A stretch of 43,824 nt of DNA from Klebsormidium nitens. Taxonomy: Eukaryota > Plantae > Klebsormidiophyceae. A program made the position numbers and the translations under genes. Shown here one piece after another: positions 18,982-43,123 of the stretch (position 1 is the stretch's first letter; each line of letters begins with the position of its first letter). The DNA lies in the NCBI GenBank assembly GCA_000708835.1, contig DF237638.1, positions 1 to 43,824 of the forward strand, read 5' to 3'. The notes under the pieces are model-generated. The model ran no database searches and was not told the DNA's origin. It saw nothing but the letters and a program-made list of their open reading frames with translations.

Positions 18982-21900
18982 TTACCGGCGTTTGGCCGTT
19001 GACATACTCCCTTGACTCTCCCTCTCTTTCTCTTGGCATATCTTCAATCGAATCTGCTCTTCGTTGATCTCCACCTGAACCATCCAAAAGGCAAGAAGTT
19101 CCTTTTTTATTGCAAGGGTTCAGCATAAAGAAGAGACGCTCGCAACAAACGTTCCAGGTTTGAGTTGTAAATGCTCGGCACGTCCTTCAAACGCTTGGCG
19201 AACATGCGGCTCACCTGCTGTGAAAATTGCAGAAAGAGCGCATGTGTCTCTTCTCGTCCGGTCACTGCCAGTTCGGCTCCTCGATACCAGAGTACAGTGT
19301 CCACATGGCTCTTCTGCTTGACAGCTACTTCCAGCGCCCTGTATCAAATCACCTTGAATTAGGTGCCCGTAAACCTTGCACTCAAGAGGCAACGACCGGA
19401 ACTGGACCAACCTGAGATGTAAAAGCAACTTAAAACAACAGGCTGTGAATGTTGAAACTTTTGGAAGATCCATGAAATGATTTCATCACTCGTCCGTTTG
19501 CGAAGCCTGCTCTGGCGACGCGGGCCAGCTTGTTGCAAGTGCTACTCACCTGTCCCAGTTCTTGGCACGGATGTGGATTTTGATGGCTCGATATACAAGT
19601 CCCGCTTGGAGAAGGATGCCTTCCGCCTCTTCTATCCTTCCTTGCAAGACCGCCAGCTGTGCTGCGCGTGCCTCTTCGCGCGGCAGCGCGCGTATGTACG
19701 CCAGCGCGTCCACCATGGCCACCTGCGAAGCAAGGCCCCGCCGCGGCAAGGGGTCGGTCACACGCTCCCGGCCACCAGTGACGCCGCCCAGAAATCAGAC
19801 CCGCATACCGCACGACACCAGCGTCGCAGCCACGAGCTTTCGATCACGAGCGACTGAACAGGGCAGCCATGCCAGACCTCCGTTTGCTAGCTTGAGCATG
19901 ACGGACTGCTGAGAAGTGTCCCTCGAGGACGGGTCTCCACTGCAGACTGAGGCCGCTCTCGTGGCACTAGCTGCGCCGCTCACCTGTCCCAGTGCTGCGT
20001 AGGCCGCCTCTGCGGTGGCGGTCTCCCGTGCGGCCAGGGCCCGTGCGGCCAGTGCTGCCCAGAGGCCGTCGTCGGCCACGCAGCGGCACAGCCGGGTGGC
20101 GGCCTCCCACCGGCCTGCGGCGGCGGCTTGGGCGAGCGCGAGCGGGTACGGGGACACGGCCACGTGCACCAGGGTGCCGCGGGGGGTACGCAGCGTGGCA
20201 GCAGGCTCGCCGTAGGCCACTAGCTCCAGGCGGGGGCCGTGCTGGCTGGAAGGGGGGGTAAAAGAACGTACAGGAACTTCAGAGAGGGCAGCAGGCAGTG
20301 GAGGAGCAACGCAGAGCAACGCCAGTGCGTGGACGAACCACGTAGGTTGGCTCGGGCCATGATCGCTCCGAGCATTGTTCCAGTGCCCAAGAACGACAGG
20401 CGGTCGCCGGGTGCGCGGCGTGTACCTGACGTCGAGGCTGGCGGTGGTGGCGGGGAGCAGGCTCGGGTCGGCGGCCAGCACCCCGGGCGCGGCCCACTGC
20501 AGCACGCGGCCGCCGGCGAGGCCCAGCAGCACGTCCGCGGCCGCGTGCCACGCCAGGCCCTCCACCGCGGCGCCCAGCCGGCCCAGCGCAGGCGACTGCA
20601 CGGACCACCACCAAACCGTCACCAGGCCAGCAGCTGCATCGAGAGCCGCGTGAAAGGCGAGAAAAGGAAAACGCCGTGCGCGTATTCTTTGTTGCATGAC
20701 GTTTCAGGTGACGCACTAGTCCTCAGATTGAACCGCCCCAGTTGCGGAGGCCCTGCCAGACATGTGGGGGCCTCACCTGGAGTGCGGTGCAGTAGAGGTC
20801 GCGGTTTCTGTCGATGAGCGCTAGGCGCCGCTCCGCGGGCGTCCCGCCCTGGCTGAGCGCGACGTGCAGCACGTCCTGGCTGTGCCGCAGCGGCTCCCCG
20901 ACCGGTTGGCCCGTGGCGGTGGAGAGGCAGCGCACGCAGCGCGGGTCCAGCCGGTCGACCACGGCCAGAGTGTCGTTGCTCAAGCTGCAGTTGGCGCCCG
21001 TCAGCGCCTCGGGCCGCAGGCCTGCACGGACAGCCCCACACGACACGCTCAGCACGGGGGCTCGCCGACACTTAGCCGACTCGTCGGCATTTCAGGCTGC
21101 TGCGGCATTGGCAGGCAGGGCCGTGAGCACGAGCGTGCGCGGGGGGGGGCGGACCTTGCCACTTGGGGGTGGCGAGCGTGCGGCCGGTGTAGGAGAGCAG
21201 CTGCACGCCGGCGGAGGGGTCGGCGAGCAGGAAGAGGCGCTCCGCCTGCAGCAGCAGCAGCGGCGTGTCCGCCACCTCCACCACCACCGGCGTGTTCCAC
21301 GACGCCACGCCGTAAATGGCCACCTGCACGCGCCGCACCGAACACCCCGCGCGTCAGCTGCGCCGCAGGAGGACGGCTCGCCGACCGAGGTGGCACCTGC
21401 GCACCCCAAAGAGCACAGGCAGGGAGCCAGGCCGACGCTGGCAGGGGCCGCAAGAGGAGATCAGCACTGCATGGCAGAGAGAAGCGGGCAGGCAGGATGC
21501 GATCATGAAGCCTTGCTCGTCTTGAAGGTGCTCTACCCGCGGGTGGGGATTCGAAGGACGAGTCCTCCACCCCAGGAGCAGCCGGGGTGCGTGGTCGGCC
21601 TGGCGCCGGGGCCTCACCTGATGCGCGGTGGCCACCAGGAGGTGGTCGTACGCGAAGCTCATGGCCACCACCGCCTCGCGCACCTCCAGCTCCTCCTGCG
21701 CCGCGCTGCCCACCTCCTGCGCACCGCCCACAGCCCACCGTGAGCGTGCAGGCGAAACCACTGGAGAGAGCCGAGCGTGGGGCTTCCCGGTGGAGACAAG
21801 CAGGGTGTCCCTGCCCGGCCAGGCTGGGTGGCAGCGCAGGGGCGGGCTGCCTCACCTGGACCCGTATGCGCGCGGGCTCTGCCAGCAGCGCGCTGTGGCT

Positions 21901-24107
21901 GCCCCACTCCACCCTCCGCTTCACCATGTGGCCCACCGCCAGGAGCCCGCCCGCTCCACCGACCGCCAGCCGCGATCCGTCGCAGCTCCAAGCTACACTT
22001 CGCACCATGCTGCCCTCGAACGAGTAGTGCGATGCAAACACGCCGCTGCTCTCGCACAGGTACACCGCACCTGAGGAGGGAGCAGCAGGGGCGGGGGTGA
22101 GCTTGATAAGCAGGGAACGGCTGCGAGTTGCACGAAAGCACAAAGTCACAGCTGGGCGAGCAGCTGCACAGCATCCCCCCTGTACACTACACTGGCTTTG
22201 TCGGTGGCCTTCGTGCCTGCTTTGTCCGCACTTGGAGCCAAGTTTCCTCACACGCCTTTGCCCAGTTGCCTTCAAGGCTCACCGCGTGTAGCAACGGCCA
22301 GGTGGCAGCCCCCCGGCGCCCAGGCGAGGGCGGTGCAGGCGCTGGGCAGCGGTGCACTCTGGAACAGCGGCCGCCCGTCCGTGTCCCACACCTGCGCAGG
22401 GCCGCGCGCATCAACAAGGGAAGGCTACCTCAAGCGGGCACCGGGCGGGCACCATCGACCACAGCCCGCATGGCAGAGCAGAGGTGCGCAGGACAGGGCA
22501 AGGTCGTACCCCAGTCGATATGAAGGAGCAGGCCTTCCTGACCGGGTGTTCTGCGCCAAAAAGGCCCTGGAGGGCAGGTCCCCCTTCAGGGCTGGCTTGG
22601 TGCCTTACCTTGTAGATGGCGTCTTCCCCTCCTGACGCAATCTTGTCAGCGGCAGGGCTCCAGTCCACTGCCAGAATGGGCGCGTCGTGGGCTCTCCACT
22701 GTAGAGGCCTGGCCCCCGCGGCCAGGGGCGCCACCAGCAGCAGCCCCCCACGCGGGTACACCAGCGCGGCCGCATCAGGGCTCCACGCCAGGCACAGCAC
22801 CGGGCCATCTGCACCACAGCACTCTCCGGAGATCAATGACAGTCTCACCAAAGATGGAGCACCTCTGAACTTCTCAAAGCGCTTTTCGGACGAGTCGGCT
22901 TTCCTTCCTCCCGGCTGGGGAAGATTCTCCATGCAGGGCTCACCGATTTGCGCTAGGACGGAGCGCAGCATGCCGCTGCGAGACCAGATCTTGAGCGCCC
23001 CGTCCTGGCCCCCCGTGGCCACAGCAGTCCCTGCAGCCACAGGCCCACGCACCGAGATGAGCGGCAGGGAGGACAGCCGGAGACGAGCGGGGCAGGCCTG
23101 GTGGAGGGACGCCAGTGGGCAGAGGCAACTGTCCATTGCACGAGTGCATGAGCGCAGACTTGGCACAAGCCAAAGTTAGATCCATGCGTTGCTCATGAAA
23201 GAGCAGCACCATCAAGAGCGGACTGTCCTTCGCCCCAGTCAGGAGCTGACTAGCCAGTATTCCCACCTTCCTGGTTCCATTGGATGGCGGTTAGCGGGCC
23301 CGCATGCGCGTCCACTCGTTTCTCCTCCCGCCCGTTTGCCCGCATCAGCCGGAATGTGCCTGCCAGGCCCATGAGAGGACGGCCTTCAGTCTTCATGAAG
23401 CGTCAGGGCTTGCAGACATGGCCTCCCTCAAAACATTCGGGCAGCAAACACACGTGGGGCGATCATTGCCCCAGGTTTATCCCCCACGGCTCACCATCGT
23501 CCGCGGCCAGCAGGAAGACATCGGTGGTGGCGCCTGGCTGAGGCTTGCGAGAGGCGCAGGGGTACCAGTGCAGCGAGGAGCAGGGGGCATCCAGCTCACA
23601 TACCTGCACCCAGCCGCGCAGCGCAGGTCAGCAGCCAGCACGCAAACAGGCGCGGCGCAGGCAGCCAGAAGGGACGCAGACAGGGCACACCGCAGCAGCT
23701 GGCGGGCACGCATGGCAGCCAGAGCGCTCTGCCCTGGGCTTTGCGGAGGGCGGGGTACCTTGCTGGGCGGGTTCCCTTCCGCTGGCCAGCGCCAGAGGGC
23801 CTGGTCCTCGCTGCACGCCCACACGTCATTCCCCGCCGTCCAGGCCACCCCCGTGAGGCCCTCCGCATCTGAGGTCATTGGGGGGTCAAGGCGGGCCAAT
23901 TGCGCGGCAGACAGGGGACCAGGGAGCAGCAGGGCCCACCGCAGGGAGCAGAGCAAAGCACAGCAGAGCCAAAAACAGCAGACAGGGGGAAGAATAGTGC
24001 ACTGAAGGCTGAGCCTAGGGAAACCAATGCAGCATGCTAAGACTGAACGAGGCGGAGCGATGGTGCAGGATACGAGGTGCCGCCGCCTTGGTGACCTGCA
24101 GCCTCAT
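18982..24107 (-). CDS. IFT80: Intraflagellar transport protein 80 (IFT-B), full length
   Basis: Exon 1 24107-24074 joined to 23868 gives MRLQVTKAAAPHAEGLTGVAW. Then TAVATGGQDGALKIWSRSGMLRSVLAQ, WRAHDAPILAVDWSP...GGEDAIYKVWDTDGRPLFQS, LLLQAERLFLL, SLSNDTLAVVD, LALIDRNRDLY, WEAATRLCRCV, AEGILLQAGLVYRAIK and HVDTVLWYR, collinear with IFT80 as recalled. Last exon 19074-18982. Confidence 0.95.
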
Positions 24108-24861
24108 TGGGACCTCCCCAGCTTGGGGGGCAAGTGAGCAGGCTGGCGACAAATGAAGGCAGGCAAGGTCAGTTTCGATCAGAGCTCAGAGTTGAGCCTG
24201 TTCCCCAGGGGACCTGCTCCTCGTCTGTGCTGCAAGAGCAATTGGGCCAAGCAAGCAGCGCTGTATGGTCATCCAGAAGCTGTGGCGGGGCCAGCTGTGC
24301 TTTTCCTCACAGATTGATCAGCATGTGGAGCTGATTTTGCGGTGCCAAGTCTTTGATCAGAGCAAGCCCTCGTACGTTGGGCTGCTTTGTCTAAGACCAG
24401 CAGGGCTTGGCACCTCCGCCACCACTCTCATTCGCAGGTCCACCCTGCAGAATGCCTGCGAAAATGCTGTGCACACGTCTCTCCCACTCTCTGCAGTCTG
24501 AGTGAGCCTTCCGCAGCCAATGTTGCCAATGGGCTTCGGAAGACAGGCACCCAACTTCAAACAAGCAAGTCTCTGCGGTTAATATCATCGACGGTCGTCA
24601 TATAACCTGCTTGCCCACAGCATGAAATCGAACGGCTTCGCTTGCTTTCAGTCAGTGTGCGCGCTCCAATTCGTCCTCGGGAGTGTGCATAATATTCGAT
24701 TCTTGCCTTGCCAGTTGCAGGCAGCCTTGGTCCGCTCCCTACTTCCTGTCACAGGTAAATGTTGTAGGTAGCACTGGGTACTAGAGGTAGCAGCAAAAGT
24801 AGACTGTAGAGGGAGGTATCCGCAGCAGAAGCATCCCTAATTGAAGCTCGCTTCTCTCCCA
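24108..24861. promoter_or_regulatory. Putative bidirectional promoter between IFT80 and LRRC6
   Basis: 754 bp separates the two divergent ATGs. No specific cis-element identified; position-based inference. Confidence 0.5.
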
Positions 24862-27800
24862 ATGGCTCCCATCACGCATGCCATGCTCCAAAAGCGAGCT
24901 GAACACAACGAAGGAATTGTCTCGACACTGAAGGTGAGGCTTTGCTTCTGTGCTCCCGGCCCCTTTGCTGTACCGTGCAACTTTTAAGAGATTACACTCT
25001 GGTTTCCTGCTTCCCTGCGCGTGGATTCGTATCTGTGCTGTGCTTCCCTGGTGCTGGACCGTGGCTCCCCGCGTTGCAGGAGGTGTCCCTGCACCAGCAG
25101 GACATTGAGCGGATTGAGGGCCTGGGCCAGCTGTGCCGCCAGCTGGAGATCCTGTACCTACAAAACAACCTGATCAGCAAGATTGGTGAGCTCCCCCCTC
25201 CCACCCGCCAGGGTAACCCCTGGCAGGCCCTGTGCCTGGTGGTGTCAGCTTCTTCCCGCAGGGCACCTGCTGCCTGGGCCTGTCACATGCATGGTCCGCT
25301 GGCGAGGCAAGGGCACAGCTGCCGTGTCGCTGCTTGGCTGAGAGGGCAGTGCATTGGTGTTGCAGAGAACCTGGAGCGCCTCAAGGAGCTGAACTACCTG
25401 AACTTGGCCGTCAACAACATCACGCGGGTGAGCGCCTGGCGACTCTTTTCCTCTGGAACCGCAGCTGTGCGCAGTTGGCACTGTTTAAGTGCGTTGTTGC
25501 ACCCTGGCATCAGTGGACCCCCTAGCTTACGGCCACCCCTGCCATCGGCGTCGCTGCCGTTTGCTTTCTCTCCCCTCTTACTCAGCCGCTGCGCTGTGCG
25601 CCTGCAGATTGAGGGCCTGGAGCGCTGTGAGTCGCTGCGCAAGCTGGACCTCACAGTCAACTTTGTGGACAAGGCCGGCCTCCTCACCATACAGCGCCTG
25701 CGCACCAACGCCGCCCTGCGTGAGCTGTGAGTGCCGCCCCACCGTCCCTTGTTGCCCAGCTGGAGCTCTCGCTCTAGCAATGCCGTCCTGCTGCCTGGTG
25801 CCTTGGCTGCGGCCTGCTGTTGGTGACACTACGCCCCGTGTGCAGGTATCTCACGGGCAACCCCTGCCAGGACGTCCCCGGGTACCGCCAGTATGTGGTG
25901 GCCAGCTTGCCTGCCCTGCAGGTCCGCTCCCTGCCCTCATCTCCTCACAGCGCCGCGCGGCGTGCCCTGTATGCCACTCTGTGTCATGCCTGCCTGTCTG
26001 CTCTTCAACGCTTACGGCCCCCTGTTATACTGACCCTGCCTCCACCTTCCTGTGTAGCGCCTGGACGGAGTCGAGATTACAGCGTCCGAGCGCATCGCCG
26101 CAGCTCAGGTGAACCTCTCTCCCTTCACTCAACCCCCACCCCCCAGTAATCTTCAACATGGCGTCTTTTGCTTGCTGTGGCCTTAGTTCCGTGCTGGTGC
26201 AGAGGGCGCCCGCTGCTGGGTGTGCTTCCTCTGCTCACGCGTGTGATGTGCATGTGCAGGCGCTGCCGGCCATCCACGCACAGCTGCAGGCCGAGCTGGA
26301 GGCGGAGGGCGTGGATGTGCCCGCCCTGCTGCGCCCCACTGCCAGGCGTGGCGGCCCCGCAGCAACGCCTCCGCAAGAGGCCCACGACGAGCTGGAGCCG
26401 GCCTGGTGAGAGCGCGGTACTAGCAGGAGCAGCTGCGCTGCACAGAGGGTGGCGGCGGGCCCGCTGTCATTGTGTGCCGGTGGAGGGGCGTTCCGGTGTG
26501 CCTGCCCACTGACATCGTCGTGTCTGTGCTTGCAGGGACGCTGCCGGAGAAGCGGTGCGGCCGTACTCCGCTGCGACCCGCCTGGCCGAGCACCGTGAGA
26601 TGGCCGCGCTGCGTGCAAAGGCGCAAGAGCAGCAGGTCAGCCCCGCTGTCACCGTGCTCATCAGGCTTACTATCGGTATGCCTGGAACGAAATGAAGTGT
26701 GCTCGCTGTGTCGTTGCTTCACACAGTGCCCGTGCTAACCACTTCGTCTAACAGACTGCCGTCCTCTGGTGGGTGCAGGAGCGTACTCGAGAGGGCGCCC
26801 TTGCTGGCGAATCTCGCCCGCCTCCGCGCCAGGGCTTTGACCCGCTGCCCACCGCGGGGCGCATCTATCAGAAGAACGAGGGCAGGTGCGCACGACAGCT
26901 CGGATTTGGGACTCTGTGCCGCACCAGGGTGGCCCCTCCTCCATTTGCAGCGACTGCTTGGTCTGTCGACTGAATAGGTCGGCTGCTGGAGTGGCCAAGC
27001 CCCTGGCAGGTCCGAACCCCCTGCCGTGCTTTGCTGCTTTCCATAAAGTGCCGTGCTCACACCAGCATTGCCGAGTGCCTCTGACGTGCGTCCTTGTGGC
27101 GGCCTGCGTGCCAGGTGGGACTTCACTTTGGGCGAGGCTGCGGACGGGGCGGCGTGCGTGCTGGACGTGGCGGTGGGCCGCTTCCTGGACAGCAGCCTGC
27201 TGGCAGTCGACGTGCAGCCGCGCCTCGTGCGCGTCCTCATCAAGGGCCGCCTCCTGCAGCTCGCCCTCGCAGCCGAGGTCAGCCCTCCTAGCCGCAGCAG
27301 CCCAGGGCGAGCGCACGCGCGCTGCTGTTCCCCCCACTCGCCTCTGCTGACCTGTGCGCCTGCTCCTCCCGCTTGTCCCCCGCCCCCGTCCCATTGCTGA
27401 GCGGGTAGTGCTGGTGGTGCTGCAGGTGTGCACCTCGCGCAGCGTAGCACAGCGGTCGCAGACGACGGGCCATCTGGTGGTCACCATGCCCCTCGCCTAC
27501 CCGCACCTCGTGCCGAACCCGGTGCTCGCCCCGCCGCGAGCACCGCTGGCAGCCCGGGACTCCAATGGGCGGGGCAGCCGGCAGGTCGAGGAGCGGGGCG
27601 GCAGAGGCGGGGCCGTGTCCACGCGCATCCTGGCCCCGGAGAACAGCGAGGCGCAGGGCAAGCCAGGACCCGAGCAGGGGGCCGACCGGGTGAGGGAATG
27701 ACAGGAAGGTGCAGCAGGCGTGCACAAGGGCGCTTGACGCAAGACGTCGTTCTGTGACGACCCCCTCTATCCGCGTGTCTCGTAAAGGCCCCTCCTTGAA

Positions 27801-27972
27801 GATTTCCTTCAACCTGGCACGGATTCGCTGCTCTTCGTACGTACGCTGCCTAACGTCCGCCTCCCGCTTGCAGCGACCCGCCCATCCCGGCCCCCGGGCA
27901 GGCCTCCCCGAGAAGAAGTCGTCCATCAGCCGGAGCGGCGCTGCCGACACCGATATCCCGCCCCTGGAATAA
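24862..27972 (+). CDS. LRRC6: Dynein axonemal assembly factor LRRC6/DNAAF11 (LRRs + LRRcap + CS-like domain)
   Basis: [37 protein letters not shown]...[54 protein letters not shown]...YLTGNPC...[17 protein letters not shown], then [13 protein letters not shown]...[34 protein letters not shown]...[18 protein letters not shown] proposed last exon 27874-27972 ends DIPPLE*; without it the stop is at 27701. Confidence 0.93.
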
Positions 27973-29182
27973 AGTTGGCGCATGCAGTCGTCCTCGCGAG
28001 GGGCAGAGATTTCCGGGCGGTGCGCGCGCTTCTTTCCTACACGGAGGCAGAGTCGCTACCGGGAAACTGGCATCGGTAATGACCGTTCGAAGAACCCCTA
28101 GCCGGAGGCACCGGGCCGCATAGGCGCCCCTTGATCAGGCGCGTTCACGGTCGGGTGGGCACTGCGGCAAGGTCCACCGCAGGCCGGCCTCTCGTGCGAC
28201 GCGAGGTTGCGGGCTGGACACGGGGCAACGGAACACACATTCGCAATCAAGACGATCGCCCGATGTGCGCCCGCGGCAGATACCGTTGCCCTCAGCGGAC
28301 AGAGCACCCGGGTGGAAGCAGGCCGAGGGGCTGGCACCGCCCAGGGGTTACGAGCGCGCGCCTTGCCTTTGCCTTTCTGCTGCTGGGAACCTACATCCCT
28401 TCCAATTACCCCGTGAAAGAACCGGGGACGGCGAGCACCGTCCGGGTTTCGACAGTCCAAAAAGAAATATCCACGATGTCGAGAAACGGTCCGCGGCATG
28501 GCACCATTTGCGTAAGTACCAAACGGGAACTAATTATGCAGATCGATGGCCGATAAGCGTTGTCTTGACGCCTGCCTTGTGAGTCAGCATAGAACGAATT
28601 TTGTGCGCAAGTGGCTAAGCGATGTGAGAAAGACTTTCTCAACAGCATACTTTCAAGTACATCTATCGACTCCGACTGGCGTGCTATGCATCTGGACGGG
28701 CCATGTTTCGGCCTGTGTTCGCAAAAGACATAATTCATATTCAGATGAAAACGTCATTTTAGAGAGTAAAGAAAGCTTATATATAGATTGAAATGACCAA
28801 TCTGGGAACCGGAATACATATACTAAGCGGCTCGAAACCGTTGCCTGAATGCCTTTCTTCATGTAAGTCGTTGTTGACTTTGCTTTTCTGAAGCAAAACC
28901 AGTAATACCACCATGCTGCAACCTGTGGTCGAGAATTCAAGTCCATGCAATGAAAGGAACCCACCCGCTATACTGAGTGGATAGCATATTGCATATGCAA
29001 GTACACCACGCAGCTATGCCCAGCGTATTTGCAGCACACATACCGCATGTAAGTCTGCTGTGCCGGACTGAGGCCCTGCAATTAGCGAGTTCATGTTGAA
29101 AAGAGGTGGTTAAGGTCTTGACGGGTAGAATGGATGACGCCGACACTTGTGCACAAGTTTGTTCTTGCCAGAGACATTTCCG

Positions 29183-32100
29183 TCAAGCGGTTTCGGGCAG
29201 CCCCCCGTCACTGAGCGCCCCCTCGTCCAGCGTCCCCTCTACTTTCCACTTGAGGATGGCGCTCGTGTCGTAGCTCTTGCTCCCCTTGACCAGCCCCGTT
29301 CGGAGCACACGCTCCACGAACCGCTCCACGTCCACGTCCACGCGCGCGGCCACCATGCCCGGGATCTCCCCCGCCGCCACCATGCCGCACCCCAGCGCCA
29401 GGAGCGCCTCCAGCTCCGGCCCGGCCTTGCTGCTGTCGAACCTGCGACCAGGGAGTCAAACGGCGGAACACGCTCATCGCACCAGGCTTGCACCAGCGGG
29501 AGGAATTGTATATGCACTTCCTCTGTCTCACAGCGTATTCTGCAGGCTAGACTTCTAATCTAAGTGTGCCTGCTCACGGATCCTGCGCATGCCCACTTCA
29601 GAACGGCGGTTGTAGCGTGCGCCACTCCGTCTTCTCTCTGCCGGGGCTCACCTCTCGAGGGCGGTGCTGACGTCGGCGAGCGTGATGGTGCGGTTCTGCT
29701 CCGCGGCGTCGGTCCGCAGGCGGTCGAGGGCGGCGCGCAGGCGCGCGGTGTAGTCGCGCACTTCGGCGAGGTGCTGCTCCAGGGCCAGCCCCAGCAAGCC
29801 GGGGGGCGCCAGGCCGCTGCCCAGCACGTCCTCAATCACCACCTCCTGCACGCGGCGCACGCGCGCACAGCATCAGCGACGCACCACGACCGTCTCGCCG
29901 CACTGCGAGCCGGGCATCGTGCGAAAAAGGAAACCTGCCGAGCCCGCCTGCGTCTGTTGCGCGCGCTCACCTCCTTTTTGGCATGCGCGCGGAGGGCCTT
30001 GTGCAGCGCCTTGCGGCTGTCAGCGCTCTTGGCAGGGAAGAAGGCGTCGAGCGCCTCAAGGCAGTCCGCAGTGCGCGCCTTGGTATGGTTGGTGGGCGAG
30101 CACGCGCGTGCCACCGTCCGCAGCAGCTCCGCCAGCGCCGCCGCCATACGGCAGCCGTCGCGGTACGCCGCCTCGCTCAGCTCGCCAAAGAGTACCTGCA
30201 CGCCGCGCCGCGCTATCAGCACTTATAGCGCGGGGCAGCAAGGACCACGAAAAGCTGCCGCGCTCGGGGCACGGGCGCTGCCTTTCCGGCACCAGGCGAT
30301 GCTGACGCCGCCAAGTCGGACTTCAGGGCCCACAGACGTCCCTGCCGAGGGCGAGCCAAGCAACTGCCCGATGCTGGTCTCGCCGTCCTCATACCCGCAC
30401 AAACCAAGAATACTATGACCGCTACTCCAAAGAGACGTGAAAGCGCTAGCCTAGGGGGCCGCTTCCGCGACTGGTTGCGGCGCGGCTCACCGCGCGGAAG
30501 CAGTCGACGGGCGGCGGGAGGCGCGGGAGGCGGTGCAGGGCGTGCAGCATGGTGTACGTCCACTCCACCACCGCGCCGTGCGTCTCCACGCTGCGCCGCA
30601 CGTGCGCGTACAAGTACTCCTGCACGCACCGCACCCCGCGCGTGGTCAGCAACGGGAAGCGCACCAGCTGCCGAGGGCCGGCCCGGGAATGACAGGCAAG
30701 AAGAAGGGACCAGCGTGCAACACACAGGGGCGCGATAAAGCCTCGTCTACTGCGATCAGGGTGTATTTCTGCTCTCAAAGTCTGTTGCGACCCCGGCGCT
30801 CGCCCGCTGGCTCATGTTTGCGCGGGGGCGGCGTACCGGCATGGTGGACCGGGTGGCTCGCTCGGCGTCGAAGGCAGCCTTGCTGTCCCAGATGTCGGCC
30901 ACGGTCTGCAGGAACACCTCCTCGTGCAGTTGGATCTTGTGCACTGCCGGGCCCACCGCGCGCAAACACCGCGGCAACTCCGCACCACAGCCCAGCACCT
31001 GCAAGCGGGTGGGACATAGATTCGAACTTCCGTACGGACGTCATCAGTCAGGGCGGCTTGTTGTGGTGAGCTTTCCAGTCCCCAGGGATAGCGTGGTTGC
31101 TGAGTGGCGCTTCTAGGAAGATAGCAGCAGCTTCTGAATGGTCATCCGATCCCCTTCTCCCCGGTGCCGCGGTGGCCCCACCTTGAAGCGGTCGGGGTCC
31201 TTCCCGGCGACCCCCGGCAGCTCCTCGATGCTCCGCGCGGCGTCGGGCATGACGGCCACGTCGGGCGGCGCCAGACAGTCCGCCTCGCGCAGCCGCTCCG
31301 TGAGGTCGGCCAGCGTGACGCGCGCCTGCGCCGACTCCTCGCGCAGCCCGTCCACTTCCGCGCCCAGCCGCTCCGTCAGCGCGCACAGCTCCGCGGCCTG
31401 CTCCGCCGTGGCGCCGCGCGCGCCTGCGCCGCCATGCCGCAGCTTGGCCCACGCGGGCCGCGGCGTCAGCTCCCCGCGCCGCTCCTTGGCGGCCACCAGC
31501 GCGACCGCCAGCTTGGCCTGCACATCCACCAGCGCCACCTGCGCCGCGTCCAGCTCCTTCTTGGGCACGCTGCACCAGCACGGGCCGCGTCAGGGCAGGG
31601 CGCGCAGCAAAGCACGCGGGGCAGGGACACCGCAGGGCCGCCTTTTAGAACTGCCTTCCATCAGGTACCCAAAGGGGTACATCTTGGGGCAGAGAGGTAG
31701 AGTACAGGGGCCCTTCCGCTGTGACGTACAAGCACGGGCCCGGCTCCGCCGCTGTGGCTGCCTGTGGGTGGCGGCGCCCACCTGTCTGCGGCCTCGCGCC
31801 TCTCGGTCTCGAGGTGCGCCTGCAGGCGGTGCAGCTCGTGCACGCTTTGCTGCTGGGTGGCGCGCAGCCGCTGGAAGTCCTCGCGCTCCGCCAGCTGCAC
31901 GGCAGACCGGGGGGGGGCGCAGGTAAACGCTCAGCACGGCAGCGGCACGGCCAGGACAGGAAAGACGGCAAGGGTAGAGCGGGATTCGGGGAGACCGTGA
32001 CGGCAACGGGATCACGGCCAAGGGTAAGCACATTGGGCAAGACTTTGATAGGGAAGAAGCGCCTCTCGGGAGAGGGTGGGTGCGAGGTGCAGACCCGGCT

Positions 32101-34324
32101 GCACAGGAGGTGGCCGAGACAGCAGGCAGGGTTTGGCAGGACGGGTGCGCAGGGGGCGGTACTCACGCACTCGGCCTCGACCGCCAGCGCACGCTGGACC
32201 TCCTCCTTGGCGCGCAGCAGCTCCTTCTTCAGTCGCTTCATCTCCTCGCGCGTCAGCCGCACCTGTCACACCAGAAGCGCCTCAGGCAAGGGCCGACTTG
32301 CGGTGCGACTGCCTGGGGCAGCCGCTAAGCCTGGTGCACTCGACCTGAGCACAAGATGGGTCAGGATAGGCCCAGCCGTGGAGCACGACTTTGGTCCGGA
32401 AGCATAACAGTTGCTGGCTGCGCAAGTGCTGGACGGTCGACCCATGCTCCCCTCACATCCCGTGTTTTCTGCTGCCGCGGTGGCTCACCTCCGCCTTGGC
32501 CCCTTCGAACGCCTCCTGCCCCGCCTGCAGCTCGGCCCGCAGCCCCGCATTGGCGCCCTCGGTAGCACGCACCTGCGCCTCAAGCGCCTGCACACCCCGC
32601 GCCATGAGTCAGCCGAGCCCCAGAGCGCCTGTGTGCTGCTACTCAGTGTGCCACCAGTCTCGGTGAGCAAAGGGTAACAGTAGATTGCTGTGTCTCTTCT
32701 GGTGATTGTCACTCCACACGCTCCAGGAGGGGCGAGCGGCAGCCGCTGGAGGCGCGCCTAGGCTGCCCGGCCTGCGTTGGCTCACCTGCATCTGTTGCTC
32801 GATGCGCCCAACGTCCCCTTGCCGCTCCAGCAGCGCCGCCTTCCAGCGCTCCCGCTCTGCGGCCATCTCTGCCTTGTCCGCCTCTAGCCGCGTCACCACC
32901 ACAAAGAACGGGACCTGCAGGCCACCCACGCGCCGCAGGGTCAGAGCAGGCCGACGGAGCGGCGGCCACGCGCAGGCCGGTGCAACTCAGTGGGCCAGGA
33001 TGCGCCAGCTGCTCTCCCGCCAAGGTGGCAGAGAAGGACAAAGACAAGGAGACGGACAGACTCTCTTCCTCGCCAGCTCTTGCATCCGTGTCCTTTTCCA
33101 CATCATGACCGGCTGGCATGAGCAGGTTGGCGGTGTTACCTGGTCGAAGGTGAGCGAGCCGTCGCGCGAGAGGAAGTGGTCGCTGTAGATGGCGCGCACC
33201 AGCTCGTCGCGGATCACCGTGAGCACCGCCGCAAACGGCAGGCCCAGCTCGCACAGCTCGCTCAGCAGCTGCACCACCATCCGCGAGTGCGCAGACGCGG
33301 GTGAGGAGGACAGCAACCGGGGGTGGACCACGGAGTAGCACAGGAGACGCGCTGGTCAGGAGGAGGAGTTCCAACAAGACGGCATGCCTCTATGACTGCG
33401 TTAACGAATATCCTGCGGGGGGGTGAAAAAGCAGAACCCATCCGATTCAACTGCCCCGGAGTGTCTGATCCTGCTGGCTCACCTGACAGCACACTGCAGT
33501 GCGGTAGGCATCGGGTGCCCCGGGTTCTTCCGCTGTGGCGAGCCCCTTCTGGTCCTTTTTCCCCTTGTGCAGCATCTCCCGTAGTTTCACCTGCATGCGG
33601 CACAGCGCGGATCGTTGGCAAAGCTTGGGACACCCCCACCAGCTGCCTTGCTGCGGCCTGATGCGCGCCGTGACTGTGATACCTGGCGCGTCTGAGCATT
33701 GATGGATCTGCGTGAGGTGCAAGTGCCTGGAACCTAGCGGTCTTGCCTGCCCACAGCCTGGCCTCCTGGGCCAGGATCTGTGCAATGTGATCAACTAACC
33801 CCCCATAATCATGCTCCACGTTTCATTTCCCCATGCCCATGGGGTTTGGCCAGCCACAATGCGTGTTGTCTCGCGCACATACTCTGACTTCATGAGCGCA
33901 ATTGGGTCAGAGTCAGTCCCATGTTGCAGCAGCCAGGTATTGTAGAACGGCATGCGGCATGGCTCGTGCGTCTCCCCGGCGGTGCCGCTGCGTGCCTCAC
34001 CTCACAGTAGACGGCGGTGGAGCGGAACCTGTTCTCTTTGCCCTGCAGGCTGGGCGCCACGCTGCCCATCGGCGCCGTCACGCGCTCCACCTGCTGCTGC
34101 CACGTCTTGGCCACCACGTGGGGGCCCAGAGCGCCCGCCGCCACCGCCGCCCCCATTCCCTCCGTCTCTCCGGTGCTGCCTCGCCGCAGCTTGCTCGCAG
34201 CACCATTGGCAGCCAGGTCAGCAGCCGGCCTGGCCGTGCTTGAGGCCGACTTGCGGGACGGCTTGCGGCCCGAGGCGGGGCCGGCAGCAGCCCCTCCTGC
34301 TGCTAATGCTGGGATGCGCAGCAT
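29183..34324 (-). CDS. TSNAXIP1: TSNAXIP1-like coiled-coil protein (translin-associated factor X-interacting protein 1 family)
   Basis: The spliced product has AVLTVIRDELVRAIY, a long coiled coil, VLGCGAELPRCLRAVG...VADIWDSK, EYLYAHVRR...AVVEWTYTMLHAL, VLFGELSEAAY, FFPAKSADSRKAL and EQHLAEVRDY, in the order recalled for the TSNAXIP1 C-terminal half. Start MLRIP at 34324. Confidence 0.75.
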
Positions 34325-35237
34325 GGCGGCCTGCTGTGGTGCATAGGCCCACGGGGCTTCTCTCACTTTGAGGGAGGCCAAGCGGCAGCTGAAGAGGAGG
34401 TCAACAGACCGCAGCTCTGAGTGACGGGGGTTGCAGCTCCTGCCCGGCAGCTGCTGATGCAGCAAGAGGCGTCATACGCTCCGCAGAGTGTCGCAGCCGT
34501 GCACTGCAAATTATCGTTGCTGAGCTGGCGCCAGATTAACAGCCATCAGCTCTGCCTAGAGCCGAGGAAGCACTCCCGGTTGCAATATTACTTCACAGGA
34601 GGAGGGCATCGCCAAGCCTTCAGCTGTTTTCGTGAGAGGGGCCTGTTTCATTGCCCTTCATATCTGCAAGGCCGCTGTTGTGCAGTGTCCCCCAAGGTGT
34701 ACAGGAGAAAGAGCCTGGAACCACATTGTGAAAGCAGGAGATACTGCATCTGGTCAAGGACACCCCTCTGGACTCGCATCACGTCAATCATCGTGCTTGC
34801 GCATGGCATGCGTTCTCCAGCTGGTTACGGCCACTTCATCAGTGAGTGGGCGCACCGCGAGCCACTGCGTGCCTGATCCAAGAGAAGTATCCATCCAGCA
34901 GCCCGGCATGCCGGTGGGGTCCTAAAACTGCGCTGAGCGACAGCAGAAACACGAGGTCCCATGCCAATGGCCGGTCCTATGTTAAAGTCCCGACCTGAAA
35001 CGCTCAGCGGAAGGGAGTACTAGTGCCCACGCACGAGTGACGAAAGCAGGCAACACGAAGAGGCGGATCAAATGATCTGGGGGAAAGTTCAAGTTCAACT
35101 TTACTTGAAGAAAGCGGACACCGAGCGCGCGCAGTCCTTGATGACCTCTTCATCGTCGAATTGTTTGTCATGTTTTTATCGACGGCTCAGCAGATCTATT
35201 GCGGCCCTGTGAAGAGGGCTCCCCCTCCAAGACGCAG

Positions 35238-35462
35238 GTACCTATGATGTACGTTTGTACCGTGCCCTGCTGTAAGTTACCTTAGGTACGTACGAAAGCC
35301 CGTCGGCACTACCGGTGCCCCATACATACTATGGTACCATAGTACCGGTATAGGACAGTCGGCTTGTACAAGTAGCTAGGTAGGTACCTACTGTACCTAC
35401 CGTATGTCATGCAGTACCATCCTCCGGTACAATCGCCATGCAAGTGCCTTATCAGCGAGTAC
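35238..35462. promoter_or_regulatory. GTAC-dense palindromic cluster in a divergent intergenic region
   Basis: 13 GTAC copies counted in 225 bp, plus perfect palindromes TACTATGGTACCATAGTA (35327-35344) and GTAGGTACCTAC (35380-35391). The sequence pattern is certain; the regulatory role is inferred. Confidence 0.45.
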
Positions 35463-36043
35463 TACCTAAGGAGGTAACACGCTGGCAGAGCATTTCAATC
35501 AGTCACTTCAAGAGCTGCACACTTGCTGATCCTCAGCCGGCCCATTTGCTGGGCAGACCTGCAAAAATCGTAGTTGCCGTGAGGAGGCCAGCGTTGACAC
35601 TATACATCATTGGATCATAGTATCACTGTTCCTGCGGTGAGCCCCACTGCATTGCCCGTAGCACCCTATCTAAAGAAAGCCGCAATCACTGGCGCGACAC
35701 TGACCTTGATGCCAATTGAAAGGACCCGTGCAACACCTTTGAGGCCTAGCATTTGGCAACTTGGTACGACTGACATTAGACGTCGCCGCAGTCCCGTCAT
35801 TGCCAATTCAGCAAGCGGGTGCAGCGACCTACACAAAACGGAGCATGAGTACCTAAGGCGTCCGAGTTGGTCTGCAGACGCCTTTCTGCCATTCTCAGCT
35901 CGTCCCAAGAAGCCGGTACTTGTATTGAGCACGTCTCGCTTGTGATTAACGAATGGCAGACATCTGATTGAAAGAGGCCGCCAACCTGCAGGGTGGACTC
36001 TCCTTTCGTGTCGGTTGCTCTTAGAAGAAGTTCCTTCACAGCC

Positions 36044-38165
36044 ATGCCCAGCACCCGACCCTCCGGTTGGGCCCCAGACAATGCCAGCGCCGCCCTAGAG
36101 CCAGGGCCCTCGGCGGGTCCGTCGGCCCCGGTTGGCGCCTCGCCGGCCAGCGCGCAGCGGGGCCAGCAGGACGGCCAGGCAGCCTCGACCCGCCCCGGGG
36201 AGATGCGGCACATCCCCGGGAAAGCGGAGTACCGGCGCTGGGACTTCCTCAAAGGCGCAGGCCCCAGCGCGCCACCCCGCGTGGTGAGCACACGCGGACG
36301 GGCCCTGCGGAGGCTGCGGCTGAAGCAGTCTCGGTGGCTCAAGGGTCTGCCAGACTCGGAGCTAATTACCTAGACTGTTCTTGTCTGCAGTAGCCAATCC
36401 TGAGCGGCCAATTTCAGCTGCACTGTGTGGCCTTCCTTGCTGCGATGTCCTCAGCGTGATCTTGGGCAGTAGTGACCAAAAAGTTCTCGCCACTGAGGAT
36501 CGTCATGGAGCAATGCTCGTCCACCCATGGCCCGCATTGTTGGCCCGTTGATACCAACAGCCTTGTCCTCACAAGGTTGAGTGGGCGTGCAGCTGGTCCA
36601 CCATGCCAAAGACGTGGGCAAGTTCAAGGCAGGCTGGCACACAAAGAAGGCGGTCAATGTGATCAAACCAGACAAGTGAGGCCCTCGGCACACACTCAAC
36701 GGTGTACATGTCGCGTCAACAGGAAAAAACTTTGACTGGAGGCAGATCTTTGCGTTCCTGGCAGAAGTGGTACGGTTGACAAGTTTAAGAAGATGATTGG
36801 GTCAGCTGCCAGAACTTGCATGCATCGTGTACCCAAGAGATAAGTGCACTTGAGAGAGGACTCAGGAAAATGAAAAGCTTCTGGTACTGCAGTGCTCGAT
36901 TGATCCACCGAATTGTCAGACCTCTCATCAGGCCTTGCCCTCGACTTGGTTCTAGTTCACCAGTGCATTGGCCCATGGAAGGATGTCAGCAGTGCAAGCT
37001 GCCTAGTCTCACTGCCCGCTTGTGGGGCGTGCTGATGCAGGAAGCGTGTAGAGCAAGAGGCGCAGAAGTCCCGCCGCAGTGAGGCCGCGCACGCGCAGCG
37101 CAGTGCCCGCCTGAGCGAGATCAGCAATCACCTGGGGTTCAACCCGATCACGGGGGAGATGCGCGACACGCGCCCCGTCAGGTCAGGCGCCACAGCCCTG
37201 GTGCACGCCTGGAAAGTCTCCAGGCAGCGAGGCTGCCCGCCGTGCACAAAGCTGCACCGCGGGTGCAACAGCGGCCCAACGTCTCGAGCGCGTGTCCCCA
37301 AACATCGTGCAAATACAAACTACACCTTTAGTTAAGCGACAGCTCTCATAACCGTCGAATTAGATCCATGCCGGCCTGCTCACATCACATTCCCTGTGCC
37401 TCCTCCAAAATCCTTCAGAACGGCCGATCCGGTATCAGGGATCTCGGCTGGTTACAGTTGCGAGTCGCTCTGCCAGGGCGCCCGGTGCAGTCCCTTTTGG
37501 TGAAAGAAAACCTTTTGAAGCCATTGACAGTTAAGAGGGACGTGGTCGAGAAGCATAAGAATCTTACGAAACTCCAGGTTCTTGATCCCAGTTCGAAGAG
37601 CCAGTGCGGGTTGGATCCTTGGGCGGGTCGCCTGGCTGGCCATGTGACTTGGCCCGTGGGTGGTTCCTGGTGCAGGCCCCGCGAGGAGGGCATCAAGTGC
37701 TTCCAGCGGCCGCAGACGCCGCCAGCCGTCGTGCACGCCAGGCACGTGGCCGCGGAGACCAAGTTTCAAGCGCGAGCGGTGAGGGCCGGCACCGGCGGCG
37801 CGATCTGGTGCTGCCTGCCCCAGTCCCAGCCGTCCCATTCCTCCGTAGTCACCTTGCATCATGCTAGTTGCACTGAAACATGTAGGGTGTATTTGCAAGT
37901 GCACGCGTTGCTGCTGCCGCTCGGTGCAAAGGTTGGCGAGAGAGCCGCTTAGCCTCTCAATGAAGGCTTGCCATGTCCGGAAGGCCGTTCACACAGGCGT
38001 TCCAGTATTCGCACGAGTTGGCCTATCGTAGTTGATCCAGGCTGCCTGGCTCGCAAAGAGTTTACTTCTTGCACGGTGCTCTTGCAGGATCTCATCCGGC
38101 GAGAAGGACTGGCGCCGCGGCCAGTGACCGTAGCGGACAACTTCAAGCCAGAGCACTATCTGTAA
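36044..38165 (+). CDS. Hypothetical protein, 5 exons, about 214 aa
   Basis: Exons 36044-36283, 36593-36675, 37041-37181, 37676-37778 and 38088-38165 join in phase over four GT-AG introns with GC3-rich codons. Contains EMRHIPGKAEYRRWDFLKG, GFNPITGE, GIKCFQRPQTPP and LIRREGL...TVADNF. No family recognised. Confidence 0.72.
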
Positions 38166-39294
38166 ACCTGCGGGTTTATTTCAAACATCTGTCCCAGAAG
38201 TCTGCTAAGTTGAATCATGCTACAATGTTCCAGCTTGTATACGATACGTGCATGATTAAACACGAAAGATCTTGTCTCACTGCAGCTGCTGCGATCAAAG
38301 GGTAAAACCCGCTTCCAGTTTTTACAAGGTGCAAACGATTGATCGGAGAGTGCTTGACTTGCCCGCTCGAGGTATGCTGGAATATCTGGGGCTTACCCGC
38401 TGGCAGAGCTCTAGTTGATCAAATTGGACGTATAAGTGCATGCAGTTATGGGCCCAAACCACAGGCTCACTCTCCTGGACAGTGACATGCTATGCTGGGG
38501 AGATGCCACTCGTAATGTTAGATTGCGGCCTGTAAGGCTAGGCCCGGGTGCGGCCTGCAACGGATCTTTAGATATTGGTCACATTCATTCCCATACTTTT
38601 GCGCGACTTTGGCTTAGACGTGCTCAGAGTGTTGGCGACCTTTGTTTTCGAAATTGCGCAATTGGATGCGCAGGTGAGCTGCATTCTACTTGCAATCCTT
38701 ATAAGCGCATGTACAAGTACCACCCAACCGTTTGCGATCAGCTAGGACGGTACGTGACCAGCAAACTCTTGCGTGGCAAGTAATGATCCGAAGCCGGGGG
38801 GCTTGTGCACAGGTTGACAGACATCCATCATGTAGGCGTTGTTCTAACACGCCAGATTACGAAGCTGGCGCGGCAGTGACCAACTGAAACTTTCCTATAT
38901 TGGGTTCCGTCCCGCTATGTCTCATTGAAGTTTTCCGGTGCATGATTGATGCAACAGCTCGAAGGCCCCTTGAGAAATGAAAAGCGATAAGCATCCAAAG
39001 GACTGCGCTCACAGCAAACAGTACCATGATCTGATCATGGACACGAATAATGATGGCGCTTTTTCAATCTGACCGTGCACATAAGCCGTCTTCAAAACAT
39101 CAGCGGCTTTTCCACGCAACTTTGACACATGATGTGCAGCACCCTCCACTTTGGATCCACTTAAGAGGAGACGTAGTGCTTTCGCAACCGCGGGAATGAA
39201 AGTCCGCAGAATTCCTTGATAAGTCACCGACCTATCTAGCTTCCGTCGAAAGAGTGGTCGACATGCGGAGCGGCACGTGACCCGTCGTATGCCG

Positions 39295-42200
39295 TTACGT
39301 GTCGCCTCGGTCTCGTTGGTCAAGCATTTTGGCTGCAACAGCGTCCAGTTGGTCCTGCAGAGGACGTGGGAACGGAGCATCAAATGGAGAAACAATCGCA
39401 GCTTTCGTACTTGTCTTCTCACCAATCTTTCTGGGAAAGGACCCTTCGTTCTCGGAGGCCGGGTGTCAATAGTGAATACTGACCGATTGGCCGATGCTGT
39501 CTTTCTGCGGGGACTCAGCGGCAGTATCTGTTGCTGGAAAGAGCCACATGCATGTGGGTCACGGTAAGTCGTCAGACAAGCGCACTCGCAGTCCAGTCCC
39601 GCAAGCACATAACAGAGCTGCGTCCCGCGCGCGTGGCTGCTGCGCGGCTGTCCGGCTCACCCGCACGGCCGCGAGCTGCTCCACGATGGACAGCGGGTCC
39701 GTGCCGCCCGTCTCCGCGTCCAGGGCCACCTCCCGGACGCGCCGCTGGATGCTAACCAGCTGCGCCGCCGCCATGCACGACGTCAGCAGCGACGTCAGCA
39801 GTCGTAGGCGGGCAGGGAGAGAGCAAGGGGCAACGCACAGAGTGGGGCGGAGGCAGGGAGGCGCTGCCAGCGATCACCAGCTGTGCCTCCATTCAACCAA
39901 GCAGGGAGACACAGGCGCAACCAGTCTGTGCCAACGCAGAGGTGTGTTTCCCTCGGGTGCAGGGCAAGGCCTGCGGCGGTCACCTGCTTCCGGACGAGGC
40001 CCATTTCGCTGGCGAACCCCTGGATGTCCAGCGCCCGCCGGTACTCTAGCTCCCGCGTCCTGCACGCCCACACCATGTCAGCATCTTTTGCGGGCCCCTA
40101 AAATCAGCGACCAGGACGCAAGGCAGCTCGAACACCTCGCTTTGCTCGCTTCCGCACGATAGCGCACCGCTGCGGTTGCAGGCTGGGGCGTGGCCTGACC
40201 TGCCCTTGAGGCTGTGCAGCTGCTGCTCCAGCTGGCGGATGCGCTGCTGCTGCTGCCGCCCCACGCTGTGCGCCGCGCCCCGCGACGACTTCAACTCCGC
40301 CTCCAGCGCAGCTGCCTGCCGCAGCGCACGCCGCTCCGCGCCAGACTGGGCCTCTGCGGCAGCGGCCAAGGCAGCCTGGACAACCACACCAAGGCCTTGC
40401 AGTCAGTCGGAGGAATGGATCGAATGACAGACAGGGGCACGGCATGACACTGTGAAGCGCTTCGCTGCACCGGGCTTGCTTCAGCCAGGCCGTGGTGTCA
40501 CGAGCAGGGCGTGTTCGCATAGGCTGACCTCCCGACAGCTGGCCGCGGGGTCGTCCCCGCTGTCGTCGTGTGGCCCGGGAGTCCCGTCGCTGGAAGCAGC
40601 CTGGGCCAGGGCGGTGCCCATGGCCCGCACAGCGTCCGCACACTGGCGGGGCAGGAGCTGCACACCAGGGAAACGCCTATCGTGAAGACGGCGCACAGGG
40701 ACACCCTATGCTCCGATCCTTGCAGGGAGCGTGTCTGGATCGCAAAGAGAGCAACTTATAAAGAATCAGACTCGGTAAAGACAACAGAGCGAGGTATTTT
40801 CATGCTGCGGCAGCCTGAGGGCGGAGTGAATGGGCCATAGACCGGACTGGTTGGCAGCCTTGGCAACCAGCGGAAGGGTCAATCCGGCGCACGCTTTGTT
40901 TGCACCCCCGCCTCCATCTCAGTGCTGGCTCTCACCTCGAGGGCGAGGTCTAGCTGCTGGCGCATGCAGCGGCTCTCTCGCTGCGCCTGCCTTGTGCCAC
41001 TGGCGTGCTCCGCCAGCCGCTCCTGGAAGTCCCGCTCCGCAGCCTGCTGCTGGTGGCGGCACAGAAGCAGCTCTGCACACGAGGCAGGGCGGGGGGTCAT
41101 GCGACAGGCTGCCCGCAAAGAAGCAGCCCCGCTTTCCCCTCTTCGTACAAGGGATTGGGTAACAGAGGACGAGTGCTATATCCAAGAGTTGCATAGGCAT
41201 GATGCAACTCCTAGGTGGGAGCATGGCAACTCGCAGTAGGCTCCCCGCCTGGGCTCACCGCGCGTAGTTCTTTCCAGCAGCGTACACCGCTTGTCGAGCT
41301 GGGCTTGCAAGTCCTGTAAGGACAAGCAACAAGTCAGAACTTGGAGGCCAGCCGCAGTGCGAGGAGGCCCCAAACTTGGGGTGGACTTTTGGTTGCGGGG
41401 ATCCAGTCCAGCCTTAGCGGCCCTGGTACCACAGGAGCGCACTCACCTCGAGCTTGCTGCTGGCCTCGGCCGCCTGCGCGGCAGCGGCGTCCTCGCGCTG
41501 CTTGCGGTCATCCAGCAGAGCCGTGATGCGCTCCTGGGAAAACGCGTGCTGCATGATGGCACACGGAAGACAGGCCGCCTGTCAGGGCTCACTCCAGCTG
41601 GGGCAGGTGCCACGGCCAGGGCAGCGACGCCGGCAGCAACAGGCAAAGGATGCCGGTCGGAGTCCAGCTGTTCCCTTCTGCAATTTTGCCCCGGCGTGAG
41701 TGACAGCCCACCTGGTGCGCCAGCTGTGCCTGCAGCGCGGCCAGCTTGGCCACCAGCAGCTGGGCCTCCTCGTTGGGCAGGAACACCGTCCGCAGCACCT
41801 GCACACGCAACGCCTGCACGTACGTCCACAACAGGGCGGCCAGCGGGGGTGACAGAGCCAGACAAGCACCATCGTCGGGCAGCCAGAACGAGGCTCGCTG
41901 GCTGTACAGCTTCTTCCCCAATTCACTTACACAGCACAGTGTTTCAACAGTGACATTACCTCGTGTGGCGACTGCCCCGTGGTGCCCCTACCGTTCCTGC
42001 AGAGAACATATATTATTTTCAAAAACAAGTATGCTAAGGATAAGTTTGGAACAATGACAACAAGATGCTTGTCTGCTTGTGACCCCGAGTCCCCACAGAT
42101 GGAGTTACCACTTGAGCTAGTCTAGACAGGAGGCCAGTCTCATCATCTTGCCTTTTCGTTGCAAGAGGATGGGTGGCTACTCCGGCTGGCTCCTCGGCGT

Positions 42201-43123
42201 TGGCATAGTGGACGTCATGGAGCACTGGCTGGGTGAATGCCAGCAGGCTCTGGATGCGCGCCTTGTCTTGCTTGCCCTCCAACAGCAGGCTGGCGCGCTC
42301 CGCCTGCACGCACCGCACACGCATGTGGGCAGCCAGCAAAAGGCGCCCGAGCAACAACAAGGACATGGTGCCTGGTTTAACCAAAGGGAAGGCTCCTGCT
42401 GGCAAGACCAGCCCAGCAATACGCGCGGCCATGGCTGCTTTGGCTGGGCCTGCCCGTGGTGGCCTGGCTGCGGCGCGGCCTTACCTGCAGCTGCCCCACC
42501 TGGTCCCTGACCTCAAACAGCTGAAGGTGGGACTCCGCAAGCGCCTGCAGCACAAGCGAGCAACCGCTGATGAGGGGAGAGTGCCAGGTATGGGCTACCT
42601 TGTGGCCAAAGCTCTCCCACAAGCACCTTTCTTTCAATTGATGTTCAAGCCTGATGTCTCAAGCAAGAGCAGACGTTTGAATCCAGTTTGCCGTGATTAC
42701 TACACACCGGACCTTCCTCACTCGATCTATATCGGACTACACGGGGCTGCCCGCGTCTTGCTCAATCCTAGTTCATGCTTGTGCGCTTGCTGTTTCCGTG
42801 CGGCCCCACCTTCTGCAGCTGGTGCACCTGCGCTGCAGCCTTGCTGGCGGCTTGCTCCAGGCGGTACACACGGCCCCGTTCCACGCTGGCCTGCTCCACG
42901 AGGGCAGCCGCTGCTGCCCGCTCCGCGTCAAACGCGTCTGCAGAGGCAGGGGGTACGCGCGGTGTTGGCTTCGGTGTGAGCGCCAATGCAAGTGGTGCAA
43001 AGGCACGACAAAGTCGATGCACACAGGCTGCCCAATGCAGGGAGCAGCACATGAAGACTCACCCAATCGGGACTTGTAGAAGGCCACCAGCTCGGGGGAG
43101 ACTGGAAGATTTGCACGCACCAT
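39295..43123 (-). CDS. CCDC77: CCDC77-like coiled-coil (centriole-associated) protein
   Basis: MVRANLPVSPELVAFYKSRLDAFDAE..., ALAESHLQLFEVRDQVGQLQAERASLLLEGKQDKARIQSLL, VLRTVFLPNEEAQLLVAKLAALQAQL and RELEYRRALDIQGFASEMGLVRK match recalled CCDC77 blocks in order. Proposed last exon 39354-39295 (DQLDAVAAKMLDQRDRGDT*). Confidence 0.78.

Follow-up and report, generated by a model that had tools for sequence, protein, structure and literature searches.

Organisation of the five-gene region

The window analysed was the entire 43,824-bp scaffold DF237638.1 of Klebsormidium nitens, a charophyte alga whose vegetative filament is non-flagellate and whose zoospores are biflagellate (bioRxiv 10.64898/2026.02.05.698958). 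The genome of this alga comprises 1,814 scaffolds with 16,215 annotated genes (PMC4052687). A first-pass annotation of the scaffold had described five adjacent genes as a candidate cilium/centriole gene cluster, and the coordinates and adjacency that it gave were exact according to the public annotation of DF237638.1 (GCA_000708835.1) and to the reading of start and stop codons: the five coding regions lie side by side at positions 18982-43123. Three of these five neighbours could be firmly identified as non-homologous flagellar genes and a fourth one is probably flagellar.

From left to right, gene 1 (IFT80, a subunit of intraflagellar transport complex B) occupies 18982-24107 on the minus strand and runs from ATG to stop through many exons; gene 2 (DNAAF11/LRRC6, an axonemal dynein preassembly factor of 454 amino acids) occupies 24862-27972 on the plus strand; gene 3 (KFL_006890080, 29183-34324, minus strand) encodes a 784-amino acid coiled-coil protein remotely resembling TSNAXIP1; gene 4 (KFL_006890090, 36044-38165, plus strand) encodes a FAP275-like protein of 214 amino acids in five exons; and gene 5 (KFL_006890100, 39295-43123, minus strand, by its annotated coding range and length) encodes a 452-amino acid coiled-coil protein. 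As the genes alternate in strand (-, +, -, +, -), a common transcript is impossible and an operon or polycistronic reading of the run was ruled out. Two head-to-head pairs comprise four of the genes. Between the start codons of IFT80 and DNAAF11 lies an intergenic region of 754 bp (24108-24861), and between those of genes 3 and 4 one of 1,719 bp (34325-36043), both of them candidate bidirectional promoters. The tail-to-tail spacers measured 1,210 bp and 1,129 bp, and the start of gene 5 lies just 701 bp from the scaffold end. The G+C profile showed five GC-rich gene bodies with low-GC spacers between them, and no RNA genes were found in the window, hence none between the five genes.

Identification of the genes

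Genes 1, 2, 3 and 5 are spliced models and were searched exon by exon as stop-free pieces, while gene 4 alone was searched as a whole protein, using its annotated product mapped back to the window. The exon pieces of gene 1 carried, in order along the minus strand, WD40 repeats, the Pfam domain Beta-prop_IFT80_2nd (successive pieces matching profile positions 22-56, 54-113, 111-195 and 197-253) and then TPR_IFT80_172 (profile positions 1-29, 26-85 and 85-128), which is the domain order of IFT80. The top solved-structure match of the WD40 piece was Chlamydomonas IFT80 (5n4a, 8bd7; 1.4e-20), the protein start was read as MRLQVTK, the stop codon could be read as well, and the exons were conserved in L001, a contig of a related species. 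In gene 2 the leucine-rich repeat exons matched LRR_4 (1.2e-11, 44.9 bits), and the next two pieces matched CS_DNAAF11_C with 63.9 bits (profile 43-102) and 23.3 bits (profile 97-119), the cut-off being 27; for the annotated 454-amino acid product, LRR_9 and CS_DNAAF11_C were recorded. Gene 2 thus has N-terminal leucine-rich repeats followed by a DNAAF11-type CS domain, the arrangement of DNAAF11/LRRC6. On these predicted domains, the assignments of gene 1 to IFT80 and of gene 2 to DNAAF11/LRRC6, both already proposed in the first-pass annotation, are firm.

Gene 4 had been listed as unknown, and it matches a flagellar protein too. No Pfam family was found for its product. When it was compared by phmmer with all solved-structure sequences, the sole match at E <=1 was Chlamydomonas FAP275 (7n6g, 7sqc; E 9.6e-6), aligned over 85 residues (query residues 64-148 with chain residues 7-92). 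Both proteins are similarly small (214 amino acids as against 168 in FAP275, Cre05.g239200) and have in common the motifs RWDFLK, GxFKxGWxTK and RSxRL...GFNPI; they differ in the C-terminal third and in an N-terminal extension of 60 residues, rich in Ala, Pro, Gly and Ser, on the side of K. nitens. The exons of gene 4, at about 36044-36286, 36593-36676, 37039-37182, 37671-37778 and 38088-38165, were all conserved in the more distant contigs L002 and L009, and in four of the five exon blocks the changes were concentrated at third codon positions. From the similarity over the conserved core, the predicted product of gene 4 is a FAP275 homolog. FAP275 is an arc-type microtubule inner protein that spans the lumen of C1 in the central pair (PMC9113940, PMC12297659), one listing gives no human homolog for it (PMC6548120), and it is absent from T. 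brucei (PMC12154619); the K. nitens protein would be expected to lie in the central pair as well. We note that this places a FAP275 homolog in a streptophyte, kept in three Klebsormidium-like lineages (L001, L002 and L009).

No Pfam family was found on gene 3, either with the exon pieces or with the annotated product. Compared with the divergent metagenome contig L002, its conservation was restricted to the exons, in twelve blocks, so that at least twelve conserved exon blocks are present. A profile of its 131-amino acid exon retrieved just 12 matches among 1.84 billion representative proteins. Two of these were repeat proteins, and the remaining ones comprised proteins of Marchantia, Ceratopteris and Selaginella, Klebsormidium-like pieces and several short pieces from metagenomes or read assemblies. 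A relative in Adiantum was added by a word search with the gene 3 profile A2, which gave only fern relatives among the best 8,000 candidates and did not extend to K. nitens or animal proteins. All of the named relatives belong to land plants with swimming sperm, and none was found in seed plants or animals at E 0.001 in the profile search, so the family appears to track swimming sperm in land plants. The homologs and the K. nitens protein have several blocks in common, including an invariant TPRPxW motif. The K. nitens protein bears some 330 extra C-terminal residues encoded in five conserved exon blocks (29183-31003, minus strand), for which no family was found, and the homologs of Marchantia, Selaginella and the ferns stop just past the TPRPxW exon, without this part.

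The first-pass annotation had called gene 3 TSNAXIP1-like. In Atlas, a protein-language-model look-alike search that was run on the Selaginella homolog, the two nearest clusters were TSNAXIP1 (score 0.94; 207/256 and 205/256 features) and the third-nearest was a ciliate family, the family agreement being 5 of the 10 best family-bearing hits, which the tool flagged as doubtful; a single gene 3 exon piece gave uninformative scores of about 0.8. The Pfam domain TSNAXIP1_N (PF15739) reached only E 0.67 on the Selaginella homolog (10.7 bits against a cut-off of 27; residues 127-194), within the N-terminal block conserved with K. nitens. On the K. nitens pieces nothing was found for this domain to E 0.05, nor to E 10 with the two N-terminal pieces, and no match was recorded on the 784-amino acid product, so that no score above the gathering threshold was obtained for gene 3. 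Searches of solved structures with gene 3 pieces and with profile A2 returned coiled-coil noise only. The Chlamydomonas flagellar protein FAP145 is likewise weakly related to TSNAXIP1 (PMC11151096). We regard the TSNAXIP1 resemblance as remote and as a lead; gene 3 is nevertheless probably flagellum-related, judging from its phyletic distribution and from the gene with which it is paired.

The exon pieces of gene 5 encode protein 83-96% identical to that of L001, whereas the overall nucleotide identity is about 75%, and changes at third positions are in excess. Judged by these comparisons, gene 5 is a real coiled-coil gene that is conserved and under constraint. No Pfam family was found on its exon pieces or annotated product, and two of its exon pieces gave no match among solved structures beyond coiled-coil noise. 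A putative collinear similarity to human CCDC77, the assignment made in the first-pass annotation, is used here only as a lead. CCDC77 is a centriole A-C linker protein (PMC12290023).

Conservation of the gene order

All five genes were found in the same order in L001, at about 77% nucleotide identity, introns included; as this contig is close to K. nitens, the same order is expected by descent. Codon-position counts against L001, made in high-identity cores that had been picked by protein identity, showed a third-position excess. A crude ratio of nonsynonymous to synonymous changes (dN/dS) of 0.3-0.65 was discarded, because intron read-through in the pieces inflates the values.

A 38-kb Klebsormidium-like metagenome contig that is more distant (L009 and L011, close to L002) kept genes 3 and 4 head to head, with different flanks: after gene 4 comes an AA_kinase/ACT gene, probably an aspartate kinase, and after gene 3 a calmodulin gene, these neighbours being located at L011 15176-16273 and L009 12892-17600. 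In Selaginella the homolog of gene 3 has BAH-PHD, EamA, Spt5, Myb and carrier genes as neighbours. A further homolog of gene 3 was noticed on L006 (ENA ERZ12298651 scaffold_236_c1, 155929-176465), a eukaryote scaffold of 38% GC, where it is about equally distant from those of Marchantia and K. nitens. In these sequences the linkage was not kept beyond what descent would explain: only the pair of genes 3 and 4 survives, in L002, L009 and L011, and it is the only unit with some evolutionary depth; the five-gene run, as far as these sequences go, is young or lineage-limited. Its absence from the more distant contig and from around the gene 3 homologs of Selaginella and L006 speaks against strong selection having acted on the linkage over long periods.

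Of the two metagenome scans made for the IFT80/DNAAF11 pair, one was blank and the other gave one 1.4-kb contig without flanks. The latter, L013 (JGI Ga0314704_10108097, 1-1386), holds a DNAAF11-like match in which query residues 55-275 fall within 306 bases; it appears spliced and is probably an environmental transcript.

Upstream regions

The pattern of the X-box was not in excess in the upstream regions (3 matches as against 5.2 expected), and the three upstream regions had no words in common beyond those seen in shuffles. Short 7-mers in orthologous upstream regions did exceed shuffles, and they were given no weight because orthologous DNA has common words by descent. Sequence conservation was low in the 1,719-bp region between genes 3 and 4, the head-to-head arrangement of which was kept in L001, L002 and L009. 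In the absence of a shared motif, and with upstream regions as poorly conserved as described below, the proposed co-regulation rests on the gene layout, and both intergenic regions may act as promoters.

Chance expectation

In a simulation with random gene order, in which 400-800 of 16,215 genes were assumed to be ciliary, at least one run of four ciliary genes appeared in 0.4-9% of the random genomes, a run of five in 0.03-0.5%, and four ciliary genes out of five in 2-29%. These estimates take no account of the fact that co-expressed genes tend in general to lie next to each other. With three flagellar genes that are firm and a fourth that is probable, the run is accordingly unusual, not extreme; were gene 5 to be counted as ciliary, the run would be clearly unusual.

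Other features of the scaffold

The genes to the left of the run had been described as housekeeping or chromatin genes, and the methyltransferase, WD40 and His_Phos_1 domains found in those that were sampled are consistent with non-ciliary neighbours. The left part of the scaffold also contains an assembly gap of 339 N (11554-11892), a TCN/GAN triplet repeat coding for an extended stretch rich in Asp and Glu (10875-11165) and tandem repeats of 36 bp x3 and 62 bp x2 (12843-12950 and 17618-17742). Stop-free open reading frames of up to 409 amino acids, in the wrong frame or antisense within the GC-rich genes (such as those at 21052-22278, minus strand, and at 10636-11697 in L001), were rejected as genes and regarded as a by-product of composition.

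Discussion

The chances seem to us about even that flagellum and basal-body genes form a genuine neighbourhood here, limited to the lineage, in which pairs of genes would have common promoters and which would have grown by rearrangement around the older pair of genes 3 and 4. Each head-to-head pair would be driven by one bidirectional promoter or one patch of open chromatin, and this would become active as the non-motile filament turns to the production of biflagellate zoospores. The layout offers a plain candidate route to such co-regulation, namely two divergent pairs with short common upstream regions. The run is neither an operon nor an ancient conserved cluster. The co-regulated ciliary locus proposed in the first-pass annotation is plausible for the two divergent pairs: the gene content turned out to be more ciliary than had been supposed, but no common motif or X-box was detected and the run is not kept beyond the close relative.

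Several observations weigh against this neighbourhood. The chance estimate depends on an assumed number of ciliary genes and leaves aside the many functional classes that a scan could notice. The identity of gene 3 is remote, and the assignment of gene 5 to CCDC77 is only a lead. The upstream regions were poorly conserved even in L001, and no words of at least 9 bases were common to all three of these regions or preserved in their orthologous counterparts in L001 and L002. No pieces of IFT80, DNAAF11 or gene 5 were found in the 38-kb contig, and neither the gene 3 homolog of Selaginella nor that of L006 had a partner gene closer than 10 kb. The microsynteny that could have supported a common locus was thus seen for all five genes in L001 but only for the pair of genes 3 and 4 in the distant contig, and not around the other two homologs.

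A rival reading is a chance juxtaposition, in which rearrangements in the K. nitens lineage would have joined a few ciliary genes or gene pairs (two or three) of independent origin, with no regulatory meaning beyond that of any divergent pair. We take this tentatively as a serious possibility, though less probable than the neighbourhood. It is in keeping with the breakdown of the run in L009/L011, where calmodulin and amino-acid kinase genes flank the pair of genes 3 and 4, with the missing synteny in Selaginella and L006 and with the lack of a motif common to the upstream regions; moreover, with 800 ciliary genes at least four of five were ciliary in 29% of the random genomes and a run of four appeared in 9%, and a scan covers many windows and many kinds of pattern. 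On the other hand, the probability falls to 0.03-0.5% if all five genes are ciliary, and co-expressed neighbours would be expected to show just such a layout, with four genes in two divergent pairs. The identical gene order in one related species could in turn be read as the remnant of an ancient ciliary cluster, selectively maintained from early streptophytes in the manner of a metabolic gene cluster. This is very improbable, and largely refuted, since L001 is close enough for its order to be expected by descent, the distant Klebsormidium-like contig keeps one pair only, and the gene 3 homologs of Selaginella and L006 stand without partners; these synteny results contradict a maintained cluster.

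The run might also be shorter than it looks, if gene 5 and perhaps gene 3 were generic coiled-coil genes, leaving the IFT80/DNAAF11 pair and a separate FAP275-like gene. Both genes are without a Pfam family, TSNAXIP1_N fell below its cut-off, the Atlas agreement was of half the ten best family-bearing hits and the CCDC77 similarity is only a lead. We nonetheless consider a shorter run unlikely, as the plants in which relatives of gene 3 were detected all make flagellate sperm, seed plants not being among them, its nearest Atlas clusters were TSNAXIP1 and a ciliate family, and it was kept head to head with the FAP275-like gene in three lineages. Rather doubtful, finally, is a stronger form of the neighbourhood, a selectively favoured one for the zoospore flagellum, in which an old bidirectional TSNAXIP1-like/FAP275-like pair would have been the seed, further flagellar and basal-body genes would have been recruited into one chromatin domain, and the block would be switched on together; if true, it would provide the first eukaryotic example of an organelle-assembly gene cluster for cilia.

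Ciliary genes are usually regarded as dispersed and as being coordinated in trans only, by such factors as RFX or FOXJ1 in animals and by factors not known in green algae and plants. Our literature searches found no published description of physically clustered ciliary genes in eukaryotes. In K. nitens, flagella are built only when needed. A neighbourhood with two candidate bidirectional promoters would be a compact place to seek cis-elements and regulators by which flagellar genes are induced in the plant lineage. The streptophyte homolog of FAP275 is a by-product that stands by itself, and so is the TSNAXIP1-like family that appears to follow swimming sperm in land plants.

Comparison with known systems

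Bacterial flagellar operons and the polycistronic loci of green algae resemble the K. nitens run in that motility genes are linked; in K. nitens, in contrast, the genes alternate in strand and lie 0.75-1.7 kb apart. Eukaryotic and bacterial flagella are unrelated. With the metabolic gene clusters of plants and fungi the run shares the adjacency of non-homologous genes of one function. Each such cluster encodes successive reactions of a single pathway and is, as a rule, retained or lost whole, whereas the K. nitens run was not kept outside close relatives and its products would act in separate sub-structures, namely the intraflagellar transport train, dynein preassembly, the central pair and possibly the centriole. 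There is a likeness, too, with eukaryotic co-expression neighbourhoods and divergent pairs, such as the clustered male-reproductive genes of Arabidopsis (PMC5389543), in which unrelated genes of one programme are adjacent, head-to-head pairs have short common upstream regions, and the linkage is loose and evolutionarily labile. The K. nitens run differs from these in that its theme is one organelle, the flagellum and basal body, over a length of five genes. The run would thus be a co-functional gene neighbourhood with putative bidirectional pairs, which is a known kind of arrangement.

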